Shown here: piece after piece, positions 25,297-62,944 of the stretch | How the letters are laid out: each line of letters opens with the position of its first letter | Numbering within the stretch: position 1 is the stretch's first letter | Assembly: GCA_026770705.1 (NCBI GenBank) | Contig: JANJGN010001343.1 | Location: 1-64,000 of the forward strand | Direction: 5' to 3' | DNA from: Isurus oxyrinchus | Lineage: Eukaryota | DNA length: 64,000 nucleotides | Position numbers and translations under genes: made by a program | The notes under the pieces: model-generated | The model's database searches: none | What the model saw: the letters and a program-made list of their open reading frames with translations, nothing else | Told to the model about the DNA's origin: nothing

Positions 25297-25436
25297 TCAA
25301 ACAGTCTGTCGACTTCCTTTCACTGTTTGTCTCTCCCAGACACAGACTCCAGCAATAGTGATAACCACAGCCACAAGGAATATCACAGCTCGTATTCCCA
25401 GGATCAGGATCACGTGCAGAATCTCTCCTCCACTGT
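25297..25436 (-). CDS. Siglec-like gene B: terminal TM exon with intramembrane Arg and short tail
   Basis: Acceptor ttctctag, phase 1. (Y)SGGEILHVILILGIRAVIFLVAVVITIAGVCVWERQTVKGSRQTV*. This frame is not in the ORF track. Confidence 0.85.
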
Positions 25437-27141
25437 CTAGAGAACACACAGAAAGAAATCATCACTGACTCTCCGCTTTCAATCTCTCACTCTGGCTGAA
25501 CAATCAAGCTTCATATCACTACAACATTTGCTGTAATATTGACCCATCCACTGGGATTCAATGTGGAATGAATGTTTTCATTGTAAACACTCTAAGAGTG
25601 GACAATCGGAACTTTCCCCTTAGCGTGGAACATTGGTGAGAATGGATCATTGTGCTGTTGGACTCCCTGTCCAATGTTTCTCTCCATCGCTGTGTACAGG
25701 ATTGTGCTGTAGAAAATTCTGGAAACGTTTAGTGCAGCGTGGAAATCCATCTCGGACGCGTGTGCGAATCGGGCAGGATCGAGATGGACTCCCTCACGGA
25801 CTTACTCACCCCGCTTAATAAACAGTTCCAATCTTTACCCAGAGAGAGGGGAGAATGTGGAACTCGCTCCCACAGGGAGTGGTTGAGGTGAACAGTATCG
25901 ATGTATTTAAGGGGCAGGAGGGTCGGTAACCAGAGGGACACAGATTGACGAACCGGAGGGGGAGATGAGGAGAATTTGTTTTGATAGAGCGAGTTGTTGT
26001 GATCTGGAAGGTGCTGCCTGAAAGGGCGGTGGAAGCAGATTCAATAGGAACTTTCAAAAGGGAAATTGGATTAACACTTGAAGGAGGAAGATGGGGGCAA
26101 AGTGGAGTGGTGGTTAGTGGATCTGATTGGATAGAACATTGAAAGACCTGGCACAGGCACAATGGGCTGAATGGCCTCCTCCTGTGCTGTATCATTCTCC
26201 GCTTCTATGATCTCTCCCCCAGTTAGTAACCGCTCCAGATCCCTCTTGAAGGCAACAGAGAGACAGCAACCACCACACCCACTGACAGCACATTCCCGAG
26301 GATCCCTACTCTCTGGGAAAAGATGAACTCCCCAACATCCAGCCTATTCCTGCTTCCTGGAGAGTGTAAACCCTTCCCAGAGCGCGGATGAATCTTTCAA
26401 TAAACTGTATTATCAAATCTACCATTTGATATATAAGTTAATTTCGATGAACTTACAGCATGTGTTGCAAATTGTGAAGTGAAGTTGGCTGAAAAGCTGG
26501 GAGGTGCAAGGTTAAGCACCACAGTGCCATCACTGGTGGGAGGATGTAAAGACAGTGTGACGTTTACATATGTTGCCCCCATTATAAACAGGGTCATTGG
26601 ACATGATGGCAAAACTGAACACTGGAAAGGTGAGAAAATGAAGTAAGCTCTTCACTAACAGGAAATCCCTTCCTAAACTTCCTTATCTCTCCCTTTCTCT
26701 CAGATACACAAAAAATTTGTCACAGGGCATTATAAGGAGGAGTTAGGACAGGCAAGAGTTACGGATTAGGAAGCTTCTTAAAGGAGGAGAGAGATACACG
26801 GAGAGGTGGGGAGTATCAGTTGGAATCTTTGTGCATGTGAGTTTCTGGAATAGACTTTGTAATTTGGATATTCTTCGATAAATATGAATGGGAACACATA
26901 TCCCAGAATCCAGGAGAACTCTCCAGTGCAGTACTGAGGGAGTTCAGGTAACTCACAAGGGAGTGTGTACTACTGAGTTAGTGTGTGAGTGTGTCTTTCT
27001 GTGTGCTCATGAGTGTGGGATTGTGTGTGTGCATGCACTTTGGGTCTGTACATTTGTGAGTGCTTGTGTGTGTGTGCGTGGGAGAGCATCTGAATATTTG
27101 TGTTTGGAGATGAGAGAAATATTAAAGTCTGTGTAACTCAC

Positions 27142-27423
27142 ATTCCACAGTGATGGTTATGAACCCCTCCACTGCTCCATGTTCATTCTCTGCCACACAC
27201 TGATATTCTCCAGTGTCCCTGGATGTAACGTGAGGAATCACCAACCACAGCTCATTGTTGGAACTTGTTCTGTTCATTGGGACATTAAGATGTCGCCACA
27301 TCAGGTTAGAAGCTGGGAAGCTCTCGACAGAGCAGATTATCACTGCAGAATTCCCCTCAATTATATTGATCGATGAAGCGTTAATCATATCTGGAGAAGT
27401 AATTGAGAGATTCCGTGGTGCGT
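27142..27423 (-). CDS. Siglec-like gene B: second C2/I-set Ig exon
   Basis: 282 nt, phase 1-1, AG/GT. YAPRNLSI..EGNSAVIICSVESFP..W..DTGEYQCVAENEHG. Confidence 0.93.
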
Positions 27424-28289
27424 CTAAAAACAAATACAGATCAGTTAACTTACACTGACTGTGAAGCACTTTGAAAGACACTGAGAATGTGAAAGGTGTG
27501 ATGTCAATGTACGTTCTTTCACCACATAGCCCGTAATCCAGGCAGACACTTCAGTTCAGTATTGAGGGCGTGCTGCACTGTCAGAGGGTCAGTACTGAGG
27601 GAGTGCTGCACTGTCAGTGTGTCAGTACTGAGGGAGTGTGGCACTGCCAGAGGGTCAGTCCTGAGGGGATGCTGCACTGTCGGAGGGTCAGTAGTGAGGG
27701 AGATCTGCACTGTTGGAGGGTCATTACTGAAGGAGTGCTGCACTGTCAAATGTTCGCTTCTGAGGGAGTGCTGCACTGTAGGAGGGACAGGGAGTGCTGC
27801 ACTGTAGGAGGGACAGTACTGTGGGAGCGCTGCACTGTAGGAGGGACAGTACTGTGGGAGCCCTGCACTGTAGGAGGGTTACTGCTGAGGTAAAACTGCA
27901 CAGTCAGAGCGTCAGTTCTGATTGACCAGTGCAATGTTGGAGGAGCACTACTGAGGGATCATTACACTATTAGAGAGTCAGTAATGAGGGAGTGCTGCAC
28001 TGTAGAAGGGTCAGTGCTGAGGAGGCAAACACGCTGTTATGTGTGTACTATAGGCCTCCTGTGATAATGTGGAGTGCCAGGTACCTTTAAGAGAATACAA
28101 GTGGATAAACCATGTGACAGTACTGACCAATCACTGGACAGTGTGGGCCACTGGTTAACTGTAAGTCTAGAGCTGGAGGTGGCTGTGGGAGCAGGCAAGG
28201 ATTTAGTGCTCTGCCCTCTGTTACAATAAATAATCAGCTTGTTCTAATGTCGGTCTCTCTTGGTTATTGATAGCAAGCATCAGCTAAGA

Positions 28290-28495
28290 AGAACTCAGCA
28301 GGTCTGGCAGCATCGGGGGAGAAGAAAAGAGTTGATATTTCGAGTCCTCATGACCCTTCGACAGAACTGAGGTCATGAGGACTCGAAACGTCAACACTTT
28401 TCTTCTCCGCCGATGCTGCCAGACCTGCTGAGTTTTTCCAGGTAACTCTGTTTTTGTTTTGGATTTCCAGCATCCGCAGTTTTTTTGTTTTTATC
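28290..28495. repeat. Palindromic Penelope-type terminal-repeat remnant (hairpin)
   Basis: Inverted arms ctcagcaggtctggcagcatc..gagtcctcatgacc / ggtcatgaggactc..gatgctgccagacctgctgag. Relatives at ~11135-11215, 23140-23222, 39225-39430 and 42915-43045. Confidence 0.75.
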
Positions 28496-28574
28496 AACTA
28501 ACAAGTGTATATGAAGGAGTGCAATTCGAGTTTACTCAACCAGTGAACTCATAGACTCAAGATATAAAACCAAC

Positions 28575-30300
28575 AAACAGTCAGGGAGAGATGGACAATC
28601 CAACATGTGATCACATTTCAGAGATGTGTAAGAATAATAAAGCAGTAATACTCAGGGATTTTAACTACCCAAATATTAACTGGGACAGCTTTAGTGAGCA
28701 AGGTAGGGAGGGAGAAAAATTCTGAAGTTGCATCCAGGAGAAGATTTTTAGCCTGTGCATAGAAAGCTCAACAAGGGAGGGGACAGTTCTGGACCTAATA
28801 TATGGAAAAGCGCCGGGGAAGTTGGAAAGCGTATCAGTAGGGGAGATAGTGACTGGAACTCAATTGGATTTAGGACAGTTATGGAGAAGGATAAGTTTGT
28901 GCTGGGAATAAAAATTCTAAACTGGGGAAAGGCTAATTTTACTAAGATGAGATATGATTGGGCCCAAGTGGACTGGGAGAAGCTATTTGCAGATAAAACT
29001 GTGTCAGAGCAGTGGGAGGCATTCAAGGAGGGAATAGCGAGAGTACAGAGCAGATATCTTCCTGTAAAGACAAAGAGGGAGACCAAGTCTGGAGAACCCT
29101 GGAAGACAAGGAACATAAAGGTTAGGATTGAGAAAAAAGAGAAGCTTATGGCAGATACTGAGGGCTCAATACAGCAGAGTCCCTAGAGGAGTATAAATAG
29201 TGCAGAGGGGAACTGAAAAAGGACATTAGGAAAGATAAGAGAGTGCATGAGAAAGCACTGGTGGGTAGAATAAAGCAAAACCCAGAGGGGTTTTTTAAAT
29301 ATGTAAAGAGCCGGAGAATAACTCGGGAAAGAGTGGGGCCGCTTAGGGACCATCGAGGTAATGTGTGTGTGGACCTGGAAGACGTGGGTACAGTCCTCAA
29401 TGAATACTTTGCATCAGTCTTCACAATGGAAAAGAATGATGCAGGTATAACATCAGGGTGGAGGACAGTGAAATATGAGAGGAAATTAACACAGAGAGAG
29501 GAGGTACTAGTGGGTTTAGTGGCCTGAAAAGTGGATAAATCCACAAGCCTGGATGAGATGAATCCAAAGCTGTTGAGGGAGGAAAGGGAAGAGATATCAG
29601 GGGCCCTGGCAGTAATTTTCAAATCCTCTCTGGCCACAGGTGAGGTGCCAGAGGACTGGAGGATGGCTAATGTTGTCCCATTATTAAAAAAGGGAGGAAG
29701 GGATAGATCAGGAAATTACAGGCCAGTCAGTCTAACCTCGGTGGTGGGGAAGTTACTAGTAAGAATTCTGAAGGACAGAATGAATCTGCACTGGGAGAGA
29801 CAAGGATTAATCTGGGATATTCAGCATGGATTTGTTAAGGGAAGGTCATGTTTGACAAACCTGATCAAATCTTTTGAGGAGGTAACCAGGAGTGTTGATG
29901 AGAGTAATGCCTTTGATGTGGTCGACATGGGCTGAGGAAGGCTTTTGATCAGGTGCCTCTTGGCAGAGAGGCCAAGAAAGTAAGAGCCCATGGGATCCAA
30001 GGCAAAGTGGCACGTTGGATCCAATATTGGCTGAGGCAGGAAGCAGAGGGTGATGGTGGAGGGATGTTTCTGTGACTGGATGTCTGTTTCCAGTGGGGTT
30101 CCACAGGGCAAAGTGCTGGGGCACTTGCTGTTTGTGGTGTATATAAATGAATTGGACTTATATAAAGGGGAAATGATCACGACGCAAATGGAATTCAACC
30201 TGGAAAAATGTGAGGTGATGCACTTGGGGAGGGAGTTGCTGACCAGCATGGACATGATGGGCTAAATGGCCTCCTTCTGTCCTGTAAGTGTCTATGAGTC
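28575..30300 (+). mobile_element. Degenerate CR1 LINE ORF2 (endonuclease end and RT)
   Basis: DFNYPNINW, PEDWRMANVVPLLKKG..NYRPVSLTSVVGKLL, QHGFVKGRSCLTNL, SGVPQG; stops and frameshifts; tatgagtc tail repeats. Confidence 0.93.
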
Positions 30301-30479: not shown

Positions 30480-30776
30480 ATAGCACAGTCAGTACGAGGG
30501 TCCGCTTCGATGAAACAGATGGATATCTCACTCTGCAGCTGAGAGTGTGTCCGTGGTGTTTGAGTGATGGGATCAGGGTCAGAACAGAAGTATAGGTCAG
30601 AGTGACACCATGCTGAGTTACAGTGTTTGAGACTGATCCAGGTACGTCAGTGGGAGTGTCCCAGGTTAAGACAGGTGCTGCTGTTCCATTGCACGTTGTG
30701 TTGAAGGTGCAGCTTACATCCACACGCTTTCCTGCAATAATTTCAGCAGGGAATATCGTGGGTTTATCTGTGAAAT
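30480..30776 (-). CDS. Siglec-like gene B: first C2-set Ig exon
   Basis: 297 nt, phase 1-1. KP.I..VSCTFNTTCNG..PVLTW..SVLTLIPS.KHHGHTLSCRVRYP, including the extra Cys for the Siglec inter-domain bond. Confidence 0.93.
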
Positions 30777-32091: not shown

Positions 32092-32460
32092 CAGAAACAT
32101 GAAGCCGGGTTACAGGGTAATAGTTATGGCTCGGACCATTGTCAAATTCTATTCTGAAAAAATAAGGTCCTGCATCTTCCCGTCTGATGTTGTTTATAAT
32201 CAGGGAACAGTCGCCATCTTTCAGGTCTCCAGACAGCCGGGTCCGATGGTGGAACCGTGGTAACTCGTGACTGTGATCCTTGGAGTGAAAGGCAATGGGA
32301 GCCCAGGGAATCTGTTCCTCATTATTAAACCAGACTCCACCTCGTTGTTGGTTTTCCAGACACGATGGATAATTGTAATGACATGGAATCTGTACACACG
32401 AACCTTCCTGCGCTGTCACCTCTCGTGGAGTTTCACCTTTCCACTCTTGTGACAGTCCAA
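32092..32460 (-). CDS. Siglec-like gene B: V-set exon with essential Arg
   Basis: 369 nt, phase 1-1. EW..AQEGSCVQIPCHY..W..RTRLSGDLKDGDCSLIINNIRREDAGPYFFRIE. Confidence 0.94.
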
Positions 32461-33324: not shown

Positions 33325-33364
33325 CTTGGAGAAGTGACAGGAGGCAGTAATATTTCCCAATTAT
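33325..33364 (-). pseudogene. Gene B leader exon with the start codon mutated ATG>ATA
   Basis: ggacaATAattgggaaatattactgc..caag|gt versus ggacaATGatcggg (49152) and ggacaATGgtcggg (41322); in-frame TAA upstream in the same exon. Confidence 0.8.
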
Positions 33365-33814: not shown

Positions 33815-33955
33815 CCAGGACCTGTCCGACTGCTCGCCTGGGGAGGAACTGCCCACACGCTCTGCTTGGGCTGAATGACCTCTTCCTGTGCTGCTCCCTC
33901 TGTGTATTTAATGAGAAAGGGTTGATGTGTCACTGTGAGACAAAATGAAGAAGTT
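33815..33955 (-). promoter_or_regulatory. Gene B copy of the shared promoter / non-coding first-exon module
   Basis: Near-identical to 40731-40871, 48561-48701 and 62215-62352; ends in a gg|gtaagt donor; ETS core here is AGAA instead of GGAA. Confidence 0.65.
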
Positions 33956-37986: not shown

Positions 37987-38103
37987 AAGAAAGATGAGAA
38001 GGATCTGGAAATGAAATCTAACCGCGGAGTCAATCCTGATACAGATGATGATCTTTACGCAAACTGTGAATTTGCCAAGGATTCTGTTTATGGGAATTTA
38101 TAA
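37987..38103 (+). CDS. Orphan terminal cytoplasmic exon with Tyr motifs (DLYANC, SVYGNL*)
   Basis: Acceptor tttctattacag, phase 0, 38 aa then TAA: KKDEKDLEMKSNRGVNPDTDDDLYANCEFAKDSVYGNL. Paralogous to the exon at 62864. AATAAA at 38877. Confidence 0.75.
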   Translation, partial: KKDEKDLEMKSNRGVNPDTDDDLYANCEFAKDSVYGNL

Positions 38104-41321: not shown

Positions 41322-41361
41322 ATGGTCGGGAAATCTTATTTCATCCTGTCACTTCTCCAAG
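41322..41361 (+). CDS. Siglec-like gene C: leader exon (MVGKSYFILSLLQ)
   Basis: Acceptor at 41281, ATG at 41322, phase-1 donor caag|gt. Confidence 0.8.
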
Positions 41362-42064
41362 GTAATATCATCGTCAGCTCAGACAGATTTATGGTTAATA
41401 TTCTTTGTAAAAGATCATTCTTATCTCTTTATCTCTGTAACCTCCTGCAACTCACCCAAACAACTTCCCAGATCTCTGTGTTACTGCAATTCCGGCCTCT
41501 TGACCATCCCCCGATTCCCATCACTCCAATAGTGGCGGCCGTGCCTACAGCTGCCTGGGGCCTGAGCTCTGGAATTCACTCCCTAAACCTCGGGGATGGA
41601 GGAGATCAGAGGGTTTCATTTTACTGAGAATCACCACGACCACATCACAGCTGCAGTCAGAATAGACAGAGAGTCCAGCCCTCGCACTTCCTGCACAGTT
41701 TCACCATAGCAACCACAATATGGAAATTTAAAAATACTGAAAGTTAAACTGAAGCTCAAACCAGTCAGTGTAGAGAGATGAGATGTTTACACAGTTTCCC
41801 TGTGTATCTTGTAGACACTGTGTTGGGTGGAAGACTGGCTTCACTAAACAGGGTCCTGAGGACCATGAGCCAATGTAGAATGAACTTGTCCACTCCTGTG
41901 TCCAGGATTCTCTTCCCTCCGTTGTGAAACCTTGGGGAGTTCCTTGTGTGTCCTGTAGATGGTCCTCACTGCAGCCACTGTGCCCCAGTGATGGAGGGGG
42001 TGGATATCGAGTCTAGTGGATCTACAAACCTTCCAGAGTTAAATATTGACATTTCTCTCCATAG

Positions 42065-42440
42065 TTGGACTGTCACAAGATTGAAAAGGCGACACTTCAC
42101 GAGAGGTGACAGCGCAGGATGGTTCGTGTGTACAGATTCCATGTCATTACAGTTACTTATCAAATTTCATAGGGAGATCACGTGTCGGAATCTGCTTGAA
42201 AGGAATAGATGGGAACCCACAGCCGAAATGGTCTATAGCCTTTCATTCCGAGGGTCACAGTCACAGGGATCAAAGATTCCACCATCGGACCCGGCTGTCT
42301 GGAGACCTGAAAGATGGCGACTGTTCCCTGATTATAAACAACATCAGACGGGAAGATGCAGGACCTTATTTTTTTCAGAATAGAATTTGACAATGGTCCG
42401 AGCCATAACTATTACCCTGTAACCCAGCTTCACGTTTCTG
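42065..42440 (+). pseudogene. Gene C V-set exon, inactivated
   Basis: TGG>TGA at 42082-42084; one extra T in the poly-T of YFFR (~42370) shifts the frame; conserved C-strand Trp replaced by Cys. Confidence 0.92.
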
Positions 42441-42912
42441 GTAAGTGCTGTGTTATGATTACTCAACAATTCACATTCAACACTCAATGGGAGATAACAC
42501 AAACTGTGACGTTTACATATTAACACAAAACGCAGCTTATTATAACTTGCTATCTGATTCTCAATAACCTGGTGATAGCTTCCAGTTCAGTCCTAAAGCA
42601 ACCTCTAATACTCACTTTAATATCAATGATGAAAAGCATTAACTGTATTATCAGGTTATCCACTCTCATCAATCTCTCCTGTCCTGTTTAAAAGTCTGAC
42701 GTATCGATAAAAGAAAGATGTGCATTTCTGCAGCGCAATTTACCACCTCAGGAGGATCCAAATCCCTTCACAGCCATTGAAATTATTCCTGAATTGTAGT
42801 CACAGATGTAAAACACAGCAGGCAGTTTGTGCACAGCAAGATCCAACAAACCACAAGGTGATAAATCACCCAGATCACTGAGGAAATGAGAAGCCAGTGA
42901 ACTCAAACCTCT

Positions 42913-42950
42913 GGTCTGATGAAGAGTCATACGGACTCGAAACGTTAACC
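42913..42950 (+). ncRNA. Minimal hammerhead-ribozyme-like motif in a Penelope-type repeat remnant
   Basis: GGT-CTGATGA-A-GAGTC-atacg-GACTC-GAAA-CGTTA-ACC. Confidence 0.55.
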
Positions 42951-43299
42951 CTGTCTTCCTCTCCACTGATACTGTCAGACCTGCTGAGTCTTTCCAGCAA
43001 TTTTTGTTTTTGTTTCAGATTTCCAGCATCCGCAGTATTCTGCTTTTAACTCCAATCTCTGGTCTGAGCCTCTTCTCTCATCCAGTGTTCTCAATTCACA
43101 TGTCTCGGAGTGAACGTGTATTAAGCTGAGAGACAGAAACACTACTGCCAAAGAGCAAGAAAATCTCTCCTGATCATTGTAACCTCTCAGTTCTGATATC
43201 ATCCTTGTAAAAGTGCTTTCTCTTGTGGGACTGTGGTTTCTATTTGAACTGATGCTTCACATTATATTTCTCTAAAAGGACCCATTCTCTGTCTGTTAG

Positions 43300-43596
43300 A
43301 TTTCACAGATAAACCCACGATATTCCCTGCTGAAATTATTGCAGGAAAGCGTGTGGATGTAAGCTGCAACATCAATACAACGTGCAATGGAACAGCAGCA
43401 CCTGTCTTAACCTGGGACACTCCCACTGACGTACCTGGATCAGTCTCAAACACTGTAACTCAGCATGGTGTCACTCTGACCTATACTTCTGTTCTGACCC
43501 TGATCCCATCACTCAAACACCACGGACACACACTCAGCTGCAGAGTGAGATATCCATCTGTTTCATCGGAGCGGACCCTCGTACTAACTGTGCAAG
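43300..43596 (+). pseudogene. Gene C first C2 exon (open frame, within a pseudogene)
   Basis: 297 nt, AG/GT, nearly identical to the exons at 30480 and 58882. Confidence 0.9.
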
Positions 43597-43919
43597 GTAA
43601 TTACATACACCTTTCATTCTACATCAGCACTCCCTCAGCGCTGACCCTCTGACAGTGCAGCCCGTTCTCAGTGTCCACATTCTCAGACCTCTCAAAGTGC
43701 TTCACAGTCGATTGAAGTTAATTGATCTTTATTTGATTATTGCTGAATAAAGAGACAAGCTGTCTAAAGTTTACATCTCGCACACACCATTCTCCATGGC
43801 AACACGTCCACCTATCAGAGACCACTTGCCAACCAATCAGCACTCTCTTCCCATTAAGTATAAATTGTGGTTCACTTTCTGTTGGTAATCCTGCGAACGG
43901 GCTTCTTGATTCCTGCCCT

Positions 43920-44072
43920 GACATCTTAATGTCCAAATGAACAGAACAAGTTCCAACAATGAGCTGTGGTTGGTGATTCCTCCCATTACATATCGGGACA
44001 CTGGAGACTATCAGTGTGTGGCAGAGAATGAACATGGAGCAGTGGAGGGGTTCATAACCGTCACTGTGGAAC
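43920..44072 (+). pseudogene. Gene C second C2 exon, 5' part and acceptor replaced by a foreign ~185-bp repeat (43735-43919)
   Basis: Homology resumes at gacatcttaatgtc (HLNV) and runs to gaac|gt. Confidence 0.88.
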
Positions 44073-45743
44073 GTGAGTGTACACAGACTTCAACATCTGT
44101 CTCAGATTCAAACATTGCACAAACACACACAAATATACAGAACTAAATAGACACATGCAGACACACATGTATGAGCAATTACAAAGACACACTCACGAAC
44201 AAACACACTAGCACACACTCCCCTGTGCCTTACCTGAGTACTGCACTGGAGAGTTGGCCTGGATTCTGGGATTTGTGTTCCCAATCATGTTTATGGAAGA
44301 ATATGGAAATTACAAAGTCTATTACAGACACTCAGATGCATAGAGACACTCACAGATACTCTCTGCCTCTCCAACTCTCTCTCTCCCTTTAAGAAGCTTC
44401 CTGAAAGCTAACCCTTCGAACAATCACCGGCCCCAACTCCTCCTTATCTGATTCTGTGTGATTTTGTTTGTGTATCTGAGAGTAAGAGAGAGGTGGAGAG
44501 GTTTAGTTAGAGAATTCCTGCTGGTGAAAACCTTACATCACTTACTCACCTTTCCAGTGCACATATTTCCCAGTATGTCCAATGCCCCTGTTTATAATGA
44601 TGACTGCCTATGTAAACATCACACTGTAGTTACAGTCTCCCACCAGTGGTGGCATTGTAGCACTTAATCCTTATGTTTCCCAGCTTTTCAAGCAACTCCA
44701 CTTCCCAGTTTGCTACACAAGCTGTGAGTTCATCAGAATTAAATTATTTCTCAAATGATAGATTTGATCATTCATTTTATTGAAAACTTCCTCAGTGCCT
44801 CCCTGAAGGGTTTACACTCTCTGGGAAGCAGGAATAGGCTGGATGTTGGGGAGTTCATCTTTTCCCAGAGAGTAGGGATCCTTGAGAATGTGCTGTCAGT
44901 GGGTGTGGTAGTTCCTGTTTCTCTGTCGCCTTCAAGAGGGATCTGGAGCGGTTACTGACTGGGGGAGAGATCATGGAAGCGGAGAATGATACAGCACAGG
45001 AGGAGGCCATTCAGCCCATTGTGCCTGTGCCAGGTCTTTCAATGTTCTATCCAATCAGATCCACTAACCACCACTCCACTTTGCCCCATCTTCCTCCTTC
45101 AAGTGTTTATCCAATTTCCCTTTTGAAAGTTCCTATTGAATCTGCTTCCACCGCCCTTTCAGGCAGCACCTTCCAGATCACAACAACTCGCTCTGTCAAA
45201 ACAAATTCTCCTCATCTCCCCCTCCAGTTGGTCAATCTGTGTCCCTCTGGTTACCAACCCTCCTGCCCCTTAAATACATCGATACTGTTCACCTCAACCA
45301 CTCCCTGTGGGAGTGAGTTCCACATTCTCCCCTCTCTCTGGGTAAAGATTGGAACTGTTTATTAAGCAGGGGGTGTAAGTCCGTGGGGGAGTCCATCTCG
45401 ATTCTGCCCGATTCGCACACGCGTTCGAGATGGATTTCCACCCTGCACTAAACGTTTCCAGAATTTTCTACAGCACAATCCTGTACACAGCGATGGAGAG
45501 AAACATTGGACAGGGAGTCCAACAGCACAATGATCCATTCTCACCAATGTTCCACGCTAAGGGGAAAGTTCCGATTGTCCACTCTTAGAGTATTTACAAT
45601 GAAAACATTCATTCTACATTGAATCCCAGTGGATGGGTCAATATTACAGCAAATGTTGCAGTGATATGAAGCTTGATTGTTCAGCCAGAGTGAGAGATTG
45701 AAAGCGGAGAGTCAGTGATGATTTCTTTCTGTGTGTTCTCTAG

Positions 45744-45883
45744 ACAGTGGAGGAGAGATTCTGCACGTGATCCTGATCCTGGGAATACGAGCTGTGATAT
45801 TCCTTGTGGCTGTGGTTATCACTATCGCTGGAGTCTGTGTCTGGGAGAGACAAACAGTGAAAGGAAGTCGACAGCCTGTTTGA
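45744..45883 (+). pseudogene. Gene C TM exon with intramembrane Arg (intact frame)
   Basis: SGGEILHVILILGIRAVIFLVAVVITIAGVCVWERQTVKGSRQPV*; inverted twin of 25297-25436. Confidence 0.85.
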
Positions 45884-48560: not shown

Positions 48561-48701
48561 CACTTCCTCATTTTGTCTCACAGTGACACATCCACCCTTT
48601 CTAATTAAACACACAGAGGGAGCAGCACAGGAAGAGGTCATTCAGCCCAAGCAGAGCGTGTGGGCAGTTCCTCCCCAGGCGAGCAGTCGGACAGGTCCTG
48701 G
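48561..48701 (+). promoter_or_regulatory. Gene D promoter / non-coding first exon with PU.1-type site
   Basis: CACTTCCTCATTTT at 48561; donor at 48701. Confidence 0.65.
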
Positions 48702-49151: not shown

Positions 49152-49191
49152 ATGATCGGGAAATATTACTGCCTCCTGTCACTTCTCGAAG
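49152..49191 (+). CDS. Siglec-like gene D: leader exon (MIGKYYCLLSLLE)
   Basis: Acceptor at 49111, ATG at 49152, phase-1 donor gaag|gt. Confidence 0.8.
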
Positions 49192-50189
49192 GTAATAACG
49201 TCGTCAGCTCGGACAGTTTTTTGGCTAATAGTCTTTGTAAAAGATCATTCTTATTGAGTGTGATTGGGAACCGATTCAGCAGTGAGCCAGTGAACAAACT
49301 GACACCAAGTCCCATTCATCCATCACCCCTGTGCTCACTGATATACACTGACTCCCTGTCTGACAGCAGAATTGGAGGAGAATAGAGATCTCAGAGGGTT
49401 TTAGGGTTGGAGGAGGTTACACAGATAGAGAGTGTAGAGGGGGGATGGTGGGGTAAGAACTCGATGATGAGAATTTGAAATTTGAGTCATTGCTGGACTG
49501 GGAGTCAGTGTAGTTCAGCCAGTGACAGGGGAGCGATCCGCTGAATAGAGAATCAGGAATACCAACTGGGGGATGAGGTCTATCCTGATGCTGGGACTCG
49601 GATAACAATGTCCTGAAATTTTGTGTCTTTTGCTGATTTTGTCAGAATTTCCCATGAAGACAACACAGCAGCTCCTAGAATAGACAGGCTGTTCAGTGTC
49701 ACACTTCCTGTCCATCCTCACCATGCTAGAAACTTCAATAAGGGAGCAAGATAACTGAAAGAGAGAAGGAAGGTAAAGCTGTCTGTGTGTAAAACTGTCA
49801 AATATTCTGAGTTATCATGATTGTTTCTGATCTGCTGCAGAGTTTAAAGTTCTCAGAACATTAGCACTTTGCAGCTCAGAGAGAGACCATTGACTCACTG
49901 CCTGAAAGGGCGGTGGAAGCAGATTCAACAGGAACTTTCAGAAGGGGAACTGGATAAATACTTGAAGGGGACATTTTGCAGGGCTGTGGAGGAGAGAGCA
50001 GAGGTTAGAGTGGGACTAATTGGACAGATCTTTCAAAGGCCCAGCACAGGCTCGATGGGCCAAATGGCATCCTTCATTTCCGGATCATTCTACAATCTGA
50101 TAAATTAAGCCCCACATCAGTAACTCTTCAGGCTCCTGCTGCAGGGATGGATCTTTGAGAAGGACAGGGAACAAGAGGTTCCTGGTATC

Positions 50190-53800: not shown

Positions 53801-54472
53801 TTCCCCTCGAGTGATGTCATGCTGCTGTCCCTGAAAGGCATATTACAACAGTGTTATCACTTGGCAGGTGATGTGTGCCAGGCAGACCAAGTCCATGAGA
53901 GAAACCTGGTCACACTATCATAATGATTTTGCAATTTGTATTTATTATGAGATGTGTGCACTTAATCCAGAAGCAATAACTCCACCAATACCTTTAGAGA
54001 TTTAAAACAATAAATTAACATATTTGTCATCAAAATAAAGGATTTCAAGCACATACGTAACTACAAGACTGCTATCATAACTCCTAAAATTCCTAATTAA
54101 CCTGACTCCCAGTTACAGTCCCTTAAAGGCAACAGACCAAAAATAGATGTTAGATTTAAAACAAAATCAGCAAGTTAACCCAATGCCCCGGACAGTGGAA
54201 TTCCAAATGCATTGTCCCCAACTTCAGTTCTGTTGGAGAGCAGGCTTGTGCACAAACAGGGTCCTGAGGACCATGAACCAATGTAGAATGGACTTTTCCG
54301 CTTTTGTGTCCAGGATTCTCTTCCATCTGGTGTGATACCTTGTGGAGTTCATTGTGTGTCCTGTAGATGGTCCACACTGCAGCCACTGTGCCCCAGTGAT
54401 GGAGGGGGTGGATATCGAGTCTAGTGGATCAACAAAACATCCAGAGTTAAATATTGATATTTCTCTCCCCAG

Positions 54473-54693
54473 TTGGATTGTCACAAGAGTGGAAAGGTGA
54501 TACTCCACGAGAGGTGACAGCGCAGGAAGGTTTGTGTGTACAGATTCCATGTCATTACAGTTATCCATCAGATTTGGTAAAGAAACCACATGTCGGAATC
54601 TGGAAAATGAGAAGGTACATATGGAACAAATGGTCTAAATGGTCTATAGCCTTTCACTCCAAGGGTCACAGTCACGAGTTACCACGGTGTTAA
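54473..54693 (+). pseudogene. Extra truncated Siglec V exon (D') in gene D intron
   Basis: Intact acceptor ctccccag. VGLSQEWKG..CVQIPCHY..SHELPR, then homology is lost at ~54688 and TAA follows. Confidence 0.88.
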
Positions 54694-54849
54694 CCAGCGT
54701 CACTATTTTTAATGATTTGTCTATTTCTGCTCCCAGATCCATGAGCTTATTGTGTGTGATTGAATCCACATCATAGCTGTAATGTAAACCGAGCTGAGGG
54801 GTAATGACACCTCCCCCCTGAGTGAAGCATTTCCTCCCCACTACACCTT

Positions 54850-56410
54850 TCACCCCTCACACTGTCCGTGTAAACCCCCGTCCCATCTCCAGCCTCTCGT
54901 TCCCCTCCAAAGTCCTTGAACGTGTTTCCATCTCCCGAATCCGTTCCCATCTTTCCCGGAACTCCATGTTTGAATCCCTCCAATCAGGTTCCCACCCCAG
55001 CCACTGTGCTGAAACAGCTCTTATCAAGGTCACAAATGGCATCCTGTGTGACTGTGACAAAGGTCAACTTTCCCTCCTCCTCCTTCTCGATCTGTCTGCA
55101 GCCTTTGACACGCTCGACCACACCATCCTCCTCCAACACCTCTCCACTGTCGTCCAGCTGGGTGGGACTGCTCTCCCCTGGCTCCATTCTTATCCATCTC
55201 ATCGTAGCCAGAGAATCACTTGCAATGGCTTTGCAGCATCATCTGAACAGTGTTAGTTTTCACCTGTCCACTGAGGATCCCCAGCTCTACCTCACCACCA
55301 CCTCTCTCGACTCCTCCACTGCTGCTAAATTATCAGGCTGCTTATCCGACATCCAGTACTGGATGGGCAGAAATTCCCTCCAATTAAATATTGGAAAGAC
55401 TGAAGCCATTGTCTTCATTCCCCGCTCCAAACTCTGTTCCCTCGCTACCAACTCCATTCCTCTCCCTGGCAGCTCTCTGAGATTGAAGCCAATCTGTTCA
55501 CAGCTTTGTTGTCCCATTTGATCCTGAGATGAGCTTCCGGCCTCATATCTGCGCCCTCACTAACACCGTCTATTTCCACCTCCGTAACATCGCACGACAT
55601 CACCCTGTCTCAGCTCATCCGCTGCTGAAACCCTCATCCACACCTTCATTACCTCCAGACTCGACTGTTCCAACACACGGTCTACACTCCATAAACTTGA
55701 GGCCATCCAGAACTGCTGACCACGTCCTTATTCACACCAAGTCCCGTTCCCTTATCACCCGCTCTGCTCGATGACCGAGACTGGCTCCTGGTCAAGCAAA
55801 GTCTCAATGTCCAAATTTTCATCTTTGTTTCCTCATTATCCCTGTAATCTCCTCGTCCTCCTCCAGTATCTGCAACCCTCCCATTCTCTTTAACCTCTTC
55901 AAGTCTCTACCACTTCCCTATATCTGTAAATTCATCCTGCCAAAACAAACCTACCAATCTCTGCAACCTCCTCCAGCCACTACAACCCTCCCTATTTCTG
56001 TAACTTCCTCCTGCCCCTAAAAGCTTCCGTATCTCTGTAGCCTGCTCCAGTCCCGACAACTTTCCCTGCCCCTGTAACCTGCCCCAGTCACTACAACTCT
56101 CCCTACCTCTGCAAACTCCTCCAGACCCTACACTCTCCCAATCTCTCTTAACTTTTCCAGCCGCTACAACCCTCGCTATCTCTGTAACTCCTCCAATCAC
56201 TACAACCCTCACTGTCTCTGTAATCTCCTCCAGACCCTACACTCTCCCAATCTCTCTTAACTTTTTCAGACCGTACAACACTTCCTATCTCTGTAACCTC
56301 CTCCAGTCACTCCAACCCTCTGAGGTCTCTGCGCTCCTCCAATTCCAGCCTCTTGACCATCCCCCGATCCCATCACTCCAACATCGGCAGTTGTGCCTTC
56401 AGCCTTGAGT
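54850..56410 (+). mobile_element. L2 LINE RT fragment with its 3' 37-bp segment tandemly expanded
   Basis: RPISSLSFPSKVLER..QSG..ETALIKVTN..LLDLSAAFDTLDH; LQLNIGKTE; degenerate 37-bp units at 55860-56320. Confidence 0.9.
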
Positions 56411-56934
56411 CTTATTTTTGAGGGAATGTACAACATCCTTAGATTTCTGACCAAAATGTCATTTGATTATTTTTATTGAGCGAATGCCAAGCCCCGATAC
56501 CGAGCGAGAGCCTCCTCATTTGCTGAGTTTAAGGTGATGAGTCAGCCCCTTAGCCCGTAGAGGGGATTCTCCTCGGTAATGTGCAGCCTTGTTTGTGTCT
56601 CTCCACAAGCGCATGAGGGGTTTGTACAGAGGCTGCAGCACTGGAGGGGGTCTGCACAGGGGTCCTGGCCTGTCCTGAGCCGGTTTTAGCAAGGACCACT
56701 CTGGCCATGGCAGCTGAAAGCCAGCCATTGGACAGATGGGGCCTGTCACAAGGAGCCTGTTAGTCACTCCCCACCGTGTCTCCTGTGCTCGGATCCAGAC
56801 CATGTTGGCTGGTGGATCTGGCTCAGGAAGGGTCCTCCCCATGGGACCCCCAGATGGAAGGTGGGCCGAGCGGGTCAGTCACTTCCATGTTTATTCTGCA
56901 GCTTTAATATTTTAAGAAGGTAAGAATGTAGGAA

Positions 56935-57660
56935 CATAAGATATAGGGACAGGAGCAGGCCATTCGGCCCCTCGAGCCTGCTCTCACTGATCTGGTGGTG
57001 TCCTTAACTCCATTTTCCTGCCTGTCCCCCAAACCCTTGACTCCCTTCTCGATCAAAAACCTGCCTCACTCAGCCTTGAGTCTATTCAATGGCCCAGCCT
57101 CCAATGCTCTCTGGGGAAGAGAATTCCACAGGCTAGCGCCCCTCTGAGAGAGGAAATTCCTCCTCATCTCAGTCTTAAATGGGAGAGTCCTCATTCCGAA
57201 ACTGTGCTCCCTGGTTCTAGATTCCCCCACGAGGGGGAAACATCCTCCCAGCATCCACCCTGTCAAGCCCCCTCGGAATCGGATATGTTTCAATAAGGTC
57301 ACCCCTCATTCTTCTAAACTCCAATGGATACAGGCCCAACCTGCTCAACATTTCCTCACAGGACAAACCCTTTAATCCCAGGAATCAGCCCAGTGAAGCT
57401 TCTCTGAACTGCCTGTACACAATGATCCTGTTACAATCTCACTAACGCCCTGTGCAGCTGTTGCAAGACTTCCCTCCTTTTATACTCCATCCCTTTGCAA
57501 TAAAGGCCAACATTCCACTTGCCTTCCTCATTCCGTGGTGTTCCTGAATGCTGACTTTCTGTGATTCATGTACAAGGACACCCAGATCCCTCTGTACTGC
57601 ATTCTGCAGCCTCTCTCCATTTAAATAATATTCTGTTTTTCTATTCATCCTGCCAAAATA
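56935..57660 (-). mobile_element. CR1 LINE 3' fragment
   Basis: YYLNGERLQ..QRDLGVLVHESQK; FKTEMRRNFLSQR..WNSLP. Confidence 0.88.
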
Positions 57661-57777
57661 ATTTGTTGCCATTCTCCTCAGTATTAACCATCCTCTAAAT
57701 TCTGTCTCATCTGTAAATATCGGGTTCAGTGGATCCACAAAACATCCAGAGATAAATATTGAGATTTCTCTCCACAG

Positions 57778-58143
57778 TTGGACTGTCACAAGAGTGGAAA
57801 GGTGACACTCCACGAGAGGTGACAGCGCAGGAAGATTCCTGTGTACAGATTCCATGTCATTACAGTTATCCATCGTGTCTGGAAAACCAACCACGAGTTG
57901 GAGTCTGGTTTAATAATGAGGAACGGAGAACATTGTCTATAGCCTTTCACTCCAAGGATCACAGTCACGAGTTACCACAGTTCCACCATCGGACCCGGCT
58001 GTCTGGAGACCTGAAAGATGGCGACTGTTCTCTGATTATAAACAACATCAGACGGGAAGATGCAGGACCTTATTTTTTCAGAATAGAATTTGACAATGCT
58101 CCGAGCCATAACGTTTCCCCTGTAACCCAGCTTCACGTTTCTG
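57778..58143 (+). CDS. Siglec-like gene D: V-set exon with essential Arg
   Basis: 366 nt, phase 1-1, open. CVQIPC, GDCSL, DAGPYFFRIE. Confidence 0.94.
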
Positions 58144-58881
58144 GTAAGTGCTGTGTTATAATTACTCAACAATTCACATTCAACTCTCAATGGGAAATAA
58201 CACAAACTGTGACGTTTACACATTAACACAAAACACAGCTTATTATAACACACTGTCTGATTCTCGATATCCTGGTGATAGCTTCCAGTTCAGTCCTAAA
58301 GCAACCTCTAATACTCACTTTAATATCAATGATTAAATATATTGACTGTGTCCATCAATGTTATCAGGTTATCCACTCCCATCGATCTCTCTAATCCTAA
58401 TCTCTAATGTCTCGAAGCCTGACATATCGACAGAAGAAAGATTCACATTTCTATAGCACCTTTCACCACCTCAGAACGTACCAAATCACTTCACAGCCAA
58501 TGAGCTGATTCCTGAATTGTAGTTACTGTTGTAATGTGAGAAACACAGCAGCCAATTTGCGCACAGCAAGCTCCCTCAAATTGCAAAGTAATAAATGGCC
58601 CAGATCGCTGAGTGAATGATGGGGTAGTGCACTCCAAACTCTGGTCTGCTCCTTCACCCTCACCCACTATTATCAGTTCAAGTGTCTCGGAGTGAACGTG
58701 TGTTAAGCTGAGAGACAGAAACATCAAAGTGTCAAAGCAGGAAATGCTCTCCTGATCATTGTAACCTCTCAGTTCTGATATCATCCTTGTAAAAGTGCTT
58801 TCTCTTGTGGGACTGTGGTTTCTATTTGAACTGATGCTTCACGTTATATTTCTCTAAAAGGATCCATTCTCTGTGTGTTAG

Positions 58882-59178
58882 ATTTCACAGATAAACCCAC
58901 GATATTCCCTGCTGAAATTATTGCAGGAAAGCGTGTGGATGTAAGCTGCACCTTCAACACAACGTGCAATGGAACAGCAGCACCTGTCTTAACCTGGGAC
59001 ACTCCCACTGACGTACCTGGATCAGTCTCAAACACTGTAACTCAGCATGGTGTCACTCTGACCTATACTTCTGTTCTGACCCTGATCCCATCACTCAAAC
59101 ACCACGGACACACTCTCAGCTGCAGAGTGAGATATCCATCTGTTTCATCGGAGCGGACCCTCGTACTAACTGTGCAAG
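58882..59178 (+). CDS. Gene D first C2 exon
   Basis: 297 nt, phase 1-1, open. Confidence 0.93.
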
Positions 59179-59922
59179 GTAAGAACGGACACCCTTCCAT
59201 CTACATTAGCTAGAAAGCTCTACATAGTACACTGCAAGATCCCACAACTGCATTGTGTTTAGCAACAAATCAATAGTCTTTAACTGATACAAATTCGCCT
59301 CTGACACTGCAGCAGTCCCTAAATACTGAATCTCCAACACTGCAGCACTCCCTCAGTTCTGAACCTTCGATAGTGCAGCACTCCCTCAGTACTGACTCTT
59401 CAACAGTGCAGTGCTCCCTCAGTACTGGCCCTCCCACACTGCAGCACCCCCCGAGTTCTGACCCTCCAACAGTGCAGCACCCCCTCTGGACTGACCATCA
59501 GACAGTGCAGCTGTCCCTATGTACTGAACCTCTGACAGTACAGCACTCCCTCAGTACTGACTCTCTGACAGTGCAGCACTCCCTCAGTACTTACCCACCA
59601 ACAGTACAGCACTCCCTCAGTAATGACCCTCTGACAGTGCCGCACTCCCTCAGCACTGAACCTCTGACGGTGCAGTGCTCCCTCAGTACTGACTCTCTGA
59701 CAGTGCAGCACTCCCTCAGTACTGACTCTCTGACAGTGCAACACTCCCTCAGTACTGACCCTCTGACAGTGCAGCACTCCCTCAGTACTGAACTGAAGTC
59801 TCTGCCTGGATTACGGGCTTTGTGAAAATGAACCTACATTGAGATCATATCTTTCACATTCTAAGTGTCTTTCAAAGTGCTTCACAGTCAGTGTAACTTA
59901 ATTGATGTTTATTTGTTTATAG

Positions 59923-60204
59923 ATGCACCACAGAATCTCTCAATTACTTCTCTTGATATGATTAACGCTTCATCGATCAATATAATTGAGGGGAATTCTG
60001 CAGTGATAATCTGCTCTGTCGAGAGCTTCCCAGCTTCTAACCTGACGTGGCGACATCTTAATGTCCCAATGAACAGAACAAGTTCCAACAATGAGCTGTG
60101 GTTGGTGATTCCTCACGTTACATCCAGGGACACTGGAGACTATCAGTGTGTGGCAGAGAATGAACATGGAGCAGTGGAGGGATTCATAAACATCACTGTG
60201 GAAC
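59923..60204 (+). CDS. Gene D second C2/I-set exon
   Basis: 282 nt, phase 1-1, open. DTGDYQCVAENEHG. Confidence 0.93.
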
Positions 60205-60229
60205 GTGAGTTACACAGAATTGAACGTTC

Positions 60230-61270
60230 TCTTATTATTAGCTCATGGGATGTGAGTATTGTTGACAAGGCCAGAAATTATTGCCCATCTGTAACTGCCC
60301 CTTGAGAAGGTGGTGGTGAGCTGCCTTCTTTAACCACTGCAGTCCATGTGGTGTAGGTACACCCACAGTGCTGTTAGGGAGGGAGTTCCAGGATTTTGAC
60401 CCAGAGACGGTGAAGGAACGGCCGATATAGTTCCAAGTCCCAGGGCAGACCACCACCTCAAGTTCGCCTCCAAGTCACACACCTCACTGACTTGGAACTG
60501 TCTTGGTGGAAGAGGTTAAGGGTTTGGAAGGTGCTGTCGAAGGAGCCTTGGTGAGTTGCTGCAGCGCATCTTGTACATGGTGCACACTGCTGCCATTGTG
60601 TGCCAGTGGTGGAGGGTATGAATGTTTATGCTGGTGGCTGGGCTGTCGATCAAACAAGCTGCTCCTGGATGGTGTCGAGCTTCTTGAGTGTTGTTGGAGC
60701 TGCACTCATCCAGCCAAGTGGAGATTATTCCATCACACTCCTGACTTGTGCCTTGTCCGATGGTGGACAGGCTTTGGGGGGTCAGGAGTTGAATTACTCA
60801 CTGCAGAGTTCCCAGCCTCTTACCCGCTCTTGTAGCCACATTATTTCCTGTTGCTGGGTTGTTGCCAGGGCCAATAGCCTTTGCTGTATCCAGTATCATC
60901 AGCTGATTCCTGATGTCACGTGGAGTCAATCGAATTGTCTGAAAGCTGACATCTGTGATGCTGGGACCCTCTGGAAGAGGCCGAGATGGATCATCCACTC
61001 AGCACTTCTGGCTGAACATGGTTGCCAATGCTTCAGCCTTGTCGTTTGCACTGATGTGCTGAGCTCCCCCATCATTAAGGATGGGGATATTTGTGGAACA
61101 TCCTCCTCCTGTTAGATCCTTATTGTCCATCACCATTCATGACTGGATGTGGCAGGACTGCAGAGCTTAGATCTGACCCGTTGGTTGTGGGATCGCTTTG
61201 CTCTGTCTATAGCATGTTGTTTCCGCTGTTTGGTGTGTATGTAGTCCTGTGTGTCACCTCAGCAGCTTGG
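60230..61270 (-). mobile_element. Fragmented LINE (CR1/L2 group)
   Basis: WNSLPNSTVGVPTPHGLQ..KKAAHHHLLKG 3' end; IRLTPRDI..LDTAKAIGP. Confidence 0.8.
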
Positions 61271-61468
61271 CACCTCTGTTATATGTGAATCCTCCTTATA
61301 GAAACCTGCATGTACATGGATATTATCAATAAATATTACATAGATAAATGTTATTTGTATAGACCTTTCATGCATAGACAATATCACTTCACAAGTTCAG
61401 AATTACTACATGTACATAGGGAACCATTCTCAAACTGTACCGGAGTCATTCATTGGCTGATTTTACAG

Positions 61469-61565
61469 GGCGAGATTCCAATGAATGGAAAGCAGGATTG
61501 CTTGGAGCTGGAATCTGTTTGAGTGTTGGACTGAGTGGATTCTTCATCTTCAAGTGTGTGAGAAA
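61469..61565 (+). CDS. Gene D TM exon, uncharged core, spliced onward
   Basis: Acceptor attttacag, phase 1. (R)RDSNEWKAGLLGAGICLSVGLSGFFIFKCVR, then the canonical aa|gtaagt donor (phase 2). Confidence 0.78.
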
Positions 61566-62214
61566 GTAAGTGTGAAGGTTTAATTGGTTGTTTTTGAAAA
61601 TGTTTTCTTCAAACTTCTCTCCTTATAGAAAGAACTTGCATTTCTATAGCACCTTTTACAATCCAAAACCCTTCGCAGTCCCTGAAGAGTTTTGATGTTC
61701 ACCTAGAGTTTAACATCTCATCCAACACTCACTGTTTCACAACTCAGTCCTGTAACTGGCAGTGTTGACCCGGACCATAAAATAGCTTCTGACCTCCTGA
61801 GTTTGTGAATGCTGCTATACAAATAAAAACCTTTCTTTTGTTAGTGAATGCAATCTCTTTCCATTTTCCATGATTCATTCACTCTCTTATCGCCACTAAT
61901 GCACGCCTTCTCATTCTCTCTCTCATTCACTCTCTCTCCTATCTCCACTAATGCTCTCCTTCTCATTCTCTCTCTCGTCCTCTTACACGTTGTTCAGTAT
62001 CTCACATTTTTAAGGAGTGCTGAGCAACATCTGCTCCTTCAGAAGATCCACCTCAACACCTGGAGTGAGCAGTGAAATGAAACTCGCTCAACGACTGCTC
62101 AGCTTTACACAGGAATCACGTCATAGAGTCAGGACACAAAGGGTTAACTGTTTGCTTACAACACAACACTAAGGCCCTACATTTCAATGAAAGTGTTTTC
62201 ATAATTGTTCCCCA

Positions 62215-62516
62215 ATTCCTCATTTGACTCACAGTGACACATCCACCCTTTCTCATTAAATACACAGAGGGAGCAGCACAGGAAGAGGTCATTCAGCCCA
62301 AGCAGAGCGTGTGGGCAGTTCCTCCCCAGGCGAGCAGTCGGACAGGTCCTGGGTAAGTAACGGAACGATTGGAATTCACTTCCACCACCAACACCGTCCT
62401 TTGTTGATGTTGTGACTTTATAAAGACAGATTCCAATGATTGATGCCTTTGAAAGATTTCTACTGATTATTGAGATCTGGGTGTGAGGCTCAAGTCTGTT
62501 GTACAGAACATCTTTC
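62215..62516 (+). promoter_or_regulatory. Fourth, truncated copy of the promoter / first-exon module
   Basis: Matches 48561-48865; donor at 62352; breaks off into a CR1 fragment before any leader exon. Confidence 0.7.
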
Positions 62517-62863
62517 TGGTTAAATTGTGCAGACAGGTTACACACAGTCTACGATTATATTCCCTCGGGTCTAGAAGATTAAGGAGGGATCTAACTGAGG
62601 GGTTCAAACTGATTAAACACTCGATAGGGTCGATAGAGAGAAGCTATTCCCTCGGGTGGGGGTGGGTGGTGGGTGTCGGGTGGAGTCCAGAACAAGGGGG
62701 CTGGAACTTCAGATTGGAGCCAGGCCGTTCAGGGGTGATGTCAGGAAGCACTTCTTCACACAAAGGGGAGTGGAAATCTGGAACTCTCTCCCCAATAATC
62801 AAACCCAACACCGAATACACATCATGTTGATTGTCACTCTGTCCATTTCCATCTCTATTACAG

Positions 62864-62944
62864 AAGAGAGGAAAGGGGAAAGCAGGAATCAAATCGAACC
62901 ATCGTGTTGATGAACATCGAAGTCCTGTTTATGAAAACTGTGAG
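62864..62944 (+). CDS. Tyr-motif cytoplasmic exon (KRGKGKAGIKSNHRVDEHRSPVYENCE), 3' end replaced by a LINE fragment
   Basis: Acceptor ctctattacag and KSN..Y.NCE align with the 37987 exon; homology stops at ~62944. Confidence 0.68.

Follow-up and report, generated by a model that had tools for sequence, protein, structure and literature searches.

We have analysed a stretch of 64,000 nucleotides from the shark Isurus oxyrinchus (contig JANJGN010001343.1 of assembly GCA_026770705.1, positions 1 to 64,000 of the forward strand), which we call the window, and find that it covers a portion of a cluster in which a lamniform shark carries multiple Siglec-type receptor genes. The genes follow one plan: a leader exon, a single V-set exon bearing the Siglec arginine, C2 exons numbering one or two, and a 3′ module drawn from several interchangeable kinds. 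The window contains two of these modules, namely a single-exon transmembrane (TM) module with an arginine in the membrane span (Arg-TM; genes B and C), and an uncharged TM exon followed by a first cytoplasmic exon (cyt1) and an optional cassette exon encoding a YENC motif (gene D). Genes B and D carry closely similar ectodomain exons on unrelated membrane ends. Our preferred interpretation, to which we assign a probability of roughly 60%, is that receptors of these two kinds form a working pair, in which near-identical Siglec-type ectodomains are joined to an activating Arg-TM end in one gene and to a mainly dampening tyrosine-motif end in the other, and are homogenized by gene conversion.

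Shared ectodomains on unrelated membrane ends

The window contains runs of N at 4043-4187 and 6298-6545, and the analysis covered the sequence outside them. The exon map was built from a listing of open reading frames (ORFs), self-BLAST and inspection of splice sites, and every exon was searched singly, no joined spliced model being used as a query. A six-frame peptide search of the window recovered exactly, and where they had been placed, the two membrane peptides named in the original prediction: ILILGIRAVIFLVAVVITIAGVCVW at 25336-25410 on the minus strand and again at 45770-45844 on the plus strand, and AGLLGAGICLSVGLSGFFIF at 61492-61551 on the plus strand. All immunoglobulin (Ig) exons are of phase 1-1 with AG/GT boundaries.

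Gene B lies on the minus strand. Its leader (signal peptide) exon at 33325..33364 aligns to MIGKSYFLLSLLQ of shark homologues and ends in a G followed by the donor GTAATA. The V-set exon (32092..32460; PF07686, PF24518) is of Siglec type, with an open frame, AG/GT boundaries, phase 1-1 and an arginine within YFFRIE; it is followed by C2-1 (30480..30776; PF08205), C2-2 (27142..27423; Ig_3/I-set) and the last coding exon (25297..25436), which reads SGGEILHV-ILILGIRAVIFLVAVVITIAGVCVW-ERQTVKGSRQTV-stop. The Arg-TM exon shared by B and C encodes SGGEILHVILILGIRAVIFLVAVVITIAGVCVWERQTVKGSRQ[TP]V-stop, with the arginine at about position 7-8 of the 25-residue span, in the outer third of the TM segment. 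The tail ERQTVKGSRQTV is free of tyrosine, as had been claimed, and has 12 residues where 11 had been counted.

Gene D lies on the plus strand, about 25 kb from B. Its V-set exon is at 57778..58143, C2-1 at 58882..59178 (100% identical to Carcharodon P0236; RefSeq models are given by such handles throughout), C2-2 at 59923..60204 and the TM exon at 61469..61565. The last of these reads RRDSNEWK-AGLLGAGICLSVGLSGFFIF-KCVRK, is 100% identical to Carcharodon P0250, encodes RDSNEWKAGLLGAGICLSVGLSGFFIFKCVRK with no charged residue in the membrane span, and ends in phase 2 at 61565 with the donor GTAAGT. The cytoplasmic part consists of the 85-nt cyt1 exon (62268..62352; GSSTGRGHSAQAERVGSSSPGEQSDRSW) and the YENC cassette (62864..62968; KRGKGKAGIKSNHRVDEHRSPVYENCERGWALRNQ), which is of phase 0-0, holds a YxN motif and has the donor GTGAGT. 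The sole leader upstream of D is an intact exon at 49152..49191 on the plus strand (MIGKYYCLLSLLE); it is probably the first coding exon of D, spliced across 8.6 kb that hold inserted elements.

The claim that B and D combine near-identical C2 exons with unrelated TM exons stands. The two genes agree at 96 of 98 amino acids (99.0% of nucleotides) in C2-1 and at 88 of 93 (97.5%) in C2-2, that is, they differ at two and five residues, the six of 94 given for C2-2 in the original prediction having counted a split codon. Their V exons are likewise shared, but agree at only 106 of 122 amino acids (87%; 93.2% of nucleotides), the differences being concentrated in the C-C′ loop (NNEEQIPWAP versus NNEERRTLS), in the putative ligand-binding region, and in the G strand. 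By self-BLAST the homology between B and D stops 14 bp past the C2-2 exon, and the membrane exons that follow are unrelated.

Siglec identity of the domains

Pfam assigns the V exons to V-set and Ig_CD22, C2-1 to C2-set_2 and C2-2 to Ig_3/I-set. The best phmmer matches of the V exon in the PDB are Siglec-5, MAG, Siglec-8, Siglec-7, CD33, Siglec-10 and sialoadhesin, with best E values from 3e-14 to 1e-11; the V exon of B matches Siglec-5 with E=2.8e-14 and with the arginine aligned. The YFFRIE of both B and D aligns with YFFRVE of Siglec-5, which contains the F-strand arginine that binds the carboxylate of sialic acid. We aligned the V exons of B and D with 38 shark homologues, and in these 40 rows the arginine (R101) is kept in at least 90%. 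Along with R101, the A-strand tryptophan W6 and the cysteines C21, C26 and C83 are invariant or nearly so, C26 and C83 being invariant and C21 nearly invariant. This three-cysteine V pattern is present as SCVQIPC and GDCSL; it would provide a B-E disulfide within the sheet and a cysteine for linkage to domain 2. An AlphaFold (AF2) model of the V exon of D has a predicted local distance difference test score (pLDDT) of 87, and the 47 best Foldseek matches to it in the PDB are all Siglecs, with template-modelling scores of 0.77-0.88. A search of NCBIfam, a prokaryote-oriented library, gave nothing. Taken together, the assignment of the ectodomains to the Siglec type from sequence and modelled fold is well supported, and sialic acid binding is predicted.

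Transcripts of gene D

To follow the splicing of D we aligned Logan contigs from four runs of four studies (X1, X5, X6 and X8) to the D region, 57700-63100. The runs are only presumed to be RNA, and the GT..AG skips at predicted exon borders show that they contain spliced transcripts. All joints found in D are GT..AG. They connect V to C2-1 (58143>58882; X5, X6, X8), C2-1 to C2-2 (59178>59923; X1), C2-2 to TM (60204>61469; X1, X5, X6), TM to cyt1 (61565>62268; X5, X6, X8) and cyt1 to YENC (62352>62864; X5). Over the sites that distinguish B from D, contigs of X5, X6 and X8 match the C2-2 of D with 0 mismatches. Past 62968 the contigs continue with AAGAAAGATGA, which corresponds to KKDE, the start of a terminal exon type found in other sharks; in D this exon lies outside the window.

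The original prediction had given D an uncharged TM, a splice donor and a downstream YENC exon, all of which we find, but it had missed cyt1, and splicing TM directly to YENC shifts the frame. Such a joint does occur in X1 (61565>62864, cyt1 skipped), where the shifted frame leads to KREERGKQESNRTIVLMNIEVLFMKTVSVVGL-stop, a tail without tyrosine. We rejected the direct joint as the main form of D because of this frameshift. A phase-0 donor, GTGAGA, after FIFKC is not used either, the GTAAGT donor and cyt1 being employed both in the RNA and in the homologues. Some contigs join the end of one C2-2 exon (60203) to the start of another (59923); these come from paralogues whose C2-2 domain is doubled in tandem, like that of P0158 and P0244.

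The Arg-TM end is also found in spliced form. One X8 contig runs from the end of a C2-1 exon directly into ACAGTGGAGGAGAGATTCTGCACGTGATCC, that is, into an Arg-TM exon, giving a two-domain form as in white shark P0163, P0166 and P0188. X8 contains both D-type and Arg-TM junctions. The check on RNA junctions proposed with the original prediction thus came out in favour of the C2-2-to-TM joint of D, while Arg-TM was joined from C2-1 only, among the contig rows listed.

Homologues and three tail types

Scanning with the V exon of D, HMMER finds 226 proteins at E <=1e-10. Nearest among them are shark and ray proteins predicted by RefSeq, which NCBI has named Siglec-10/12/13/14, CD33-like or MAG-like, and RefSeq predicts such genes in at least 15 elasmobranch species. 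When the exons are compared singly, white shark proteins come closest, with 87-100% identity, the YENC exon and an orphan terminal exon described below being lowest.

The homologues end in one of three ways. In type (a) the Arg-TM exon, including its tail, is 80-95% conserved across three shark orders (Carcharodon, Scyliorhinus torazame, S. canicula, Chiloscyllium); a stingray model carries a different Arg-bearing TM. The last coding exon type of B also closes RefSeq models P0163, P0166, P0188, P0006, P0022, P0183 and P0186, and the white shark models P0163, P0166 and P0188 are intact. Type (b) is the D-type end of TM, cyt1, optional YENC and a terminal exon KKDE...LYANC...SVYGN[LV], found in Carcharodon (P0244/P0251) and in Cetorhinus (P0157/P0158), while many sharks and rays have variants of it; the YENC exon is skipped in the Carcharodon isoform P0251. 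Type (c) is a CD33-like end, LLYANINF...TEYAQIRFQ, which we find in sister genes of other sharks (P0004, P0020, P0011) and which is absent from the window. As for the origin of the modules, a region search with residues 226-270 of P0188 matched only white shark members of the family for the Arg-TM exon, and phmmer against the PDB gave nothing; a region search with residues 363-463 of P0157 matched only the shark family for the D-type tail, with no link to CD22 or other tails.

Exon-centred homogenization

How can ends this different share ectodomains this similar? Between B and D the synonymous divergence (dS) of the exons is 0.013 for C2-1, 0.032 for C2-2 and 0.072 for V, while segments of the introns that separate these exons mismatch at 11.5-16.4% of positions. 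Synonymous divergence in the exons lies far below that of the introns, so the likeness is more than chance or plain duplication would leave. The ratio of nonsynonymous to synonymous divergence (dN/dS) is about 0.7-0.85, from small counts. This contrast between exons and introns fits exon-centred gene conversion and not purifying selection on the protein.

Maximum-likelihood trees of the V and C2-1 domains lead to the same picture across species, with the caveat that they rest on 98-122 columns, have weak branch support and include some chimeric RefSeq models. In both trees the rows group by taxon and not by tail type, and tail type needs 14-15 changes, compared with a mean of 16-17.6 when tail types are shuffled. 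Grouping by taxon together with a nearly random number of tail changes implies that the ends are old and that the ectodomains have been homogenized within lineages. The 3′ modules, then, are old and conserved across shark orders, and the ectodomain exons of differing modules are kept alike by exon-centred gene conversion. The original prediction had cited gene conversion for the human pairs and had asked for per-exon phylogenies across sharks, which were carried out here for V and C2-1.

Signalling and alternative explanations

What would the two ends do? Mammalian receptors with an arginine on the outer side of the TM segment more often have FcR-gamma or CD3-zeta as their partner than DAP12. 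The Arg-TM form would pair in the membrane with an acidic adaptor bearing an ITAM (immunoreceptor tyrosine-based activation motif), the arginine position favouring an FcR-gamma/CD3-zeta-like partner over DAP12, and the receptor would then activate upon ligand binding. For the other end, we used the signature of the immunoreceptor tyrosine-based inhibitory motif (ITIM) as given in PMC7226832. By this signature the exons of D inside the window, the YENC exon included, hold no ITIM: PVYENC fails at positions -2 and +3 and is a YxN motif. The only ITIM-consensus motif of the D tail type is SVYGNL in the terminal exon, which fits S-x-Y-x-x-L. The tail of D also lacks the CD33-related combination of a membrane-proximal ITIM with a distal ITIM-like motif (LxYxxL ... 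TEYxE[IV]). Once phosphorylated, a D-type tail would be expected to recruit SHP-1/2 through SVYGNL, its YxN motifs could possibly recruit Grb2, and the net effect would be mainly to dampen signalling. We regard an inhibitory sign as likely, though not certain.

Several observations weigh against a working pair. Foremost, the pair is not intact in this window: C is a pseudogene, and B has lost its start codon. The leader of B reads ATA at 33362-33364 where the copies at 41322 and 49152 read ATG, and since an in-frame TAA lies eight codons upstream of the ATA, no upstream start can rescue the gene; a null allele, a loss of recent date or an error in the assembly may lie behind the ATA. C has a TGA and a frameshift in its V exon and has lost half of C2-2. 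D is thus the only clearly working gene in the window, and because its own terminal exon lies outside, its ITIM is predicted from homologues and from an 11-letter loose end of the contigs. The V domain, which would bind the ligand, is the most divergent part of the B-D comparison, at 87% amino acid identity. The V contigs from RNA depart from the D sequence at 57835, 58031 and 58099, so that some contigs come from paralogues or other alleles, and among the listed contig rows for this species, which were aligned to the D region, there is no C2-2-to-Arg-TM junction. The RefSeq models are predictions, of which P0161, P0162 and P0250 are plainly chimeric, and the trees share this weakness along with their low branch support. 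Finally, no FcR-gamma chain was reported for cartilaginous fish in a survey of 2014 (PMC4016189). Of the paired Siglec system originally proposed, then, the Siglec-type ectodomains, the splicing of both ends in RNA and their recurrence in RefSeq models hold up; an intact activating partner in the window does not.

These defects suggest a different account, in which there is no working pair and the window is a decaying stretch of a birth-and-death cluster. An inverted duplication would have left B and C behind as by-products that are dead or on the way to it, and their resemblance to D would reflect recent copying and neutral gene conversion and not selection for matched activating and inhibitory receptors. 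The stop, frameshift and half-deleted exon of C and the ATA of B speak for this, as do the near-neutral dN/dS of about 0.7-0.85 between B and D and the orphan exons, truncated V exons and inserted elements throughout the window. However, neither open frames nor splice sites have been lost in any of the four domain exons of B, the Arg-TM exon shows 80-95% conservation over three shark orders, tail included, and is used in RNA, and the white shark has intact Arg-TM models in P0163, P0166 and P0188. We consider general decay unlikely, and the strongest of the alternatives.

Less probable still is that the ends are not opposite at all, so that a paired receptor would be the wrong frame. The three YxN motifs of the D-type tail (VYENC, LYANC, VYGNL) would then serve as docking sites of the Grb2/PI3K type. 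All three tyrosines indeed fit YxN and only one fits the ITIM consensus, several homologues read PVYVNV or AVYGNI at the ITIM position and so fail the -2 rule, and the YENC exon is an optional cassette. Against this, homologues from lamniforms and rays have SVYGN[LV] and SIYENV, which conform to the ITIM consensus, and the motif stands at the C-terminus of a Siglec-type receptor, the usual place for ITIM and ITIM-like motifs. That a single gene makes both forms, the D ectodomain being spliced either to its own TM or to a downstream Arg-TM exon so that we would be dealing with isoforms and not with paired genes, is very improbable: the C2-1 of the X8 Arg-TM contig does end in CAAG, as in D and C and not in B, but in B as in C the Arg-TM exon lies next to V and C2 exons that belong to that gene, the two genes being on opposite strands, and gene C or a V-C2-1-TM paralogue like Carcharodon P0166 explains this contig equally well. 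We retain the working pair of an activating Arg-TM receptor and a mainly dampening D-type receptor as our preferred interpretation.

Gene C and other features of the window

Gene C spans 41322..45883 on the plus strand and comprises a leader with its ATG (41322-41360), a V exon (about 42064-42440), an intact C2-1 (43300-43596), a C2-2 remnant of which only the 3′ half is left (43925-44071) and the Arg-TM exon (45744-45883). The in-frame TGA and a 1-nt (+1) frameshift break the V frame just ahead of the Siglec arginine. According to self-BLAST, the TM region of C (44118-47757) is an inverted copy of the 3′ region of B (23402-27068) with 88.8% identity.

Stray exons of the family also occur. An orphan terminal exon, the sole copy of this exon type in the window, on the plus strand at 37987..38103 encodes KKDEKDLEMKSNRGVNPDTDDDLYANCEFAKDSVYGNL-stop, with a YxN motif and the ITIM-consensus SVYGNL; it shares 87% identity with the final exon of Carcharodon P0244, and within the window there is no TM exon upstream of it. 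A truncated V exon at 54454..54693 on the plus strand consists of the 5′ half only and ends at HELPR, after which inserted sequence follows; it has a good acceptor and an open frame and lies inside the presumed first intron of D, and tandem V exons are common among RefSeq models of the shark Siglec-like family. The 85-nt cyt1 exon is present in four identical copies (0 differences), at 33815-33899 on the minus strand and at 40787-40871, 48617-48701 and 62268-62352 on the plus strand. Apart from the copy in D, the other three are orphans, and in every case a leader exon follows some 450 bp downstream. RefSeq isoforms P0161, P0162 and P0250 of basking and white shark run from cyt1 out of frame into the leader of the next gene, which suggests either that transcripts read through or are chimeric, or that the duplication unit has its start within a tail.

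The V exon at 11790-12107 on the plus strand is Siglec-like but of a second kind and matches the N-terminus of the white shark "MAG-like" models P0244/P0251, which read YYFYV at the canonical arginine position. The match diverges after DSDVYY, where the gag-like ORFs of an inserted element start (12085-13895).

Repeats also occur in the window. Arrays of a 33-bp satellite (HSLSTDPLTVQ in one frame) at 5373-5800, 21108-21610, 23220-23871, 27556-28022, 47319-47757, 47963-48343 and 59298-59793 sit in the introns and flanks of every gene copy, where unequal exchange may use them as its substrates. Tandem copies of a 24-bp unit (NQTPFRIN in one frame) occupy 63098-64000, from after the YENC exon to the end of the window, and so stand between this exon and the presumed terminal exon. 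Retroelement-like ORFs of reverse transcriptase and gag/zinc-knuckle types at 28755-30265, 34813-37070, 49300-54250 and 54720-57700 split the C2-1/C2-2 intron of B, the spacer between B and C, and the 8.6 kb from the leader at 49152 to the V exon of D.

Comparison with known systems

Arms races between hosts and pathogens are standardly illustrated by paired Siglecs, which to our knowledge have so far been worked out in primates. The nearest parallels to the shark genes are human Siglec-5/14 and Siglec-11/16, which likewise have a Siglec V-set with the essential arginine, neighbouring genes with near-identical ectodomain exons and different ends, one with a basic TM residue and a short tail and the other with tyrosine motifs. 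In the human pairs, too, ectodomain likeness is kept by gene conversion (PMC5701461, PMC13358205). There are also clear differences. The ligand-binding domains of Siglec-5/14 are their most alike part, whereas the V domains of shark B and D are the least conserved; the shark tyrosine tail has three YxN motifs with one ITIM-consensus site; there are three tail types and not two; the activating copies in the shark window are defective; and the adaptor and phosphatase partners of the shark receptors are proposed by analogy.

White and basking shark RefSeq models (XP_041037180.1; P0163, P0166, P0188, P0244, P0157) have the same exon types and the same three architectures, although their names are automatic best-hit names and several are chimeric. 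The genes are thus already known through automatic annotation in other sharks, which limits novelty. In the searchable literature we found no paper on shark Siglec pairs, nor one treating these RefSeq models as a paired system; shark Siglecs are mentioned only as a gene family (PMC8455134).

Like the shark genes, the mammalian CD33-related Siglecs are clustered, fast-evolving V-C2 receptors, and LLYANINF...TEYAQIRFQ of the sister shark genes, a tail type outside the genes of this window, comes near the pattern of an ITIM followed by an ITIM-like motif. For bony fish, CD33-related Siglecs have been published as absent, fish having regularly only Siglec-1, CD22, MAG and Siglec-15 (PMC7226832). 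More broadly, and tentatively, we suggest that elasmobranchs may possess an old, concertedly evolving three-way Siglec system, in which Arg-TM, YxN/ITIM and CD33-like ITIM + TEYxxI ends are shuffled over lectin domains homogenized within each lineage. If so, CD33-like Siglecs that are paired and evolve fast would go back to the base of the jawed vertebrates, and neither tetrapods nor mammals would have invented them. The published view that fish have no such Siglecs would then be contradicted, and sharks would by implication have a matching ITAM adaptor with an acidic TM.

The CEACAM and FcR-like families of Xenopus offer another parallel, being lineage-specific expansions in which co-evolving ectodomains bear either activating or inhibitory ends (PMC5112662, PMC2413239), but they belong to another ectodomain family and have no lectin-type V domain. 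While the weight of our proposal is limited by the existing automatic annotation and by the fact that all function is inferred, the shark cluster would give a second, distant case of the paired-Siglec design, from which one could ask whether the design goes back to a common ancestor or arose by convergence, and on which ITAM adaptor it relies in cartilaginous fish.

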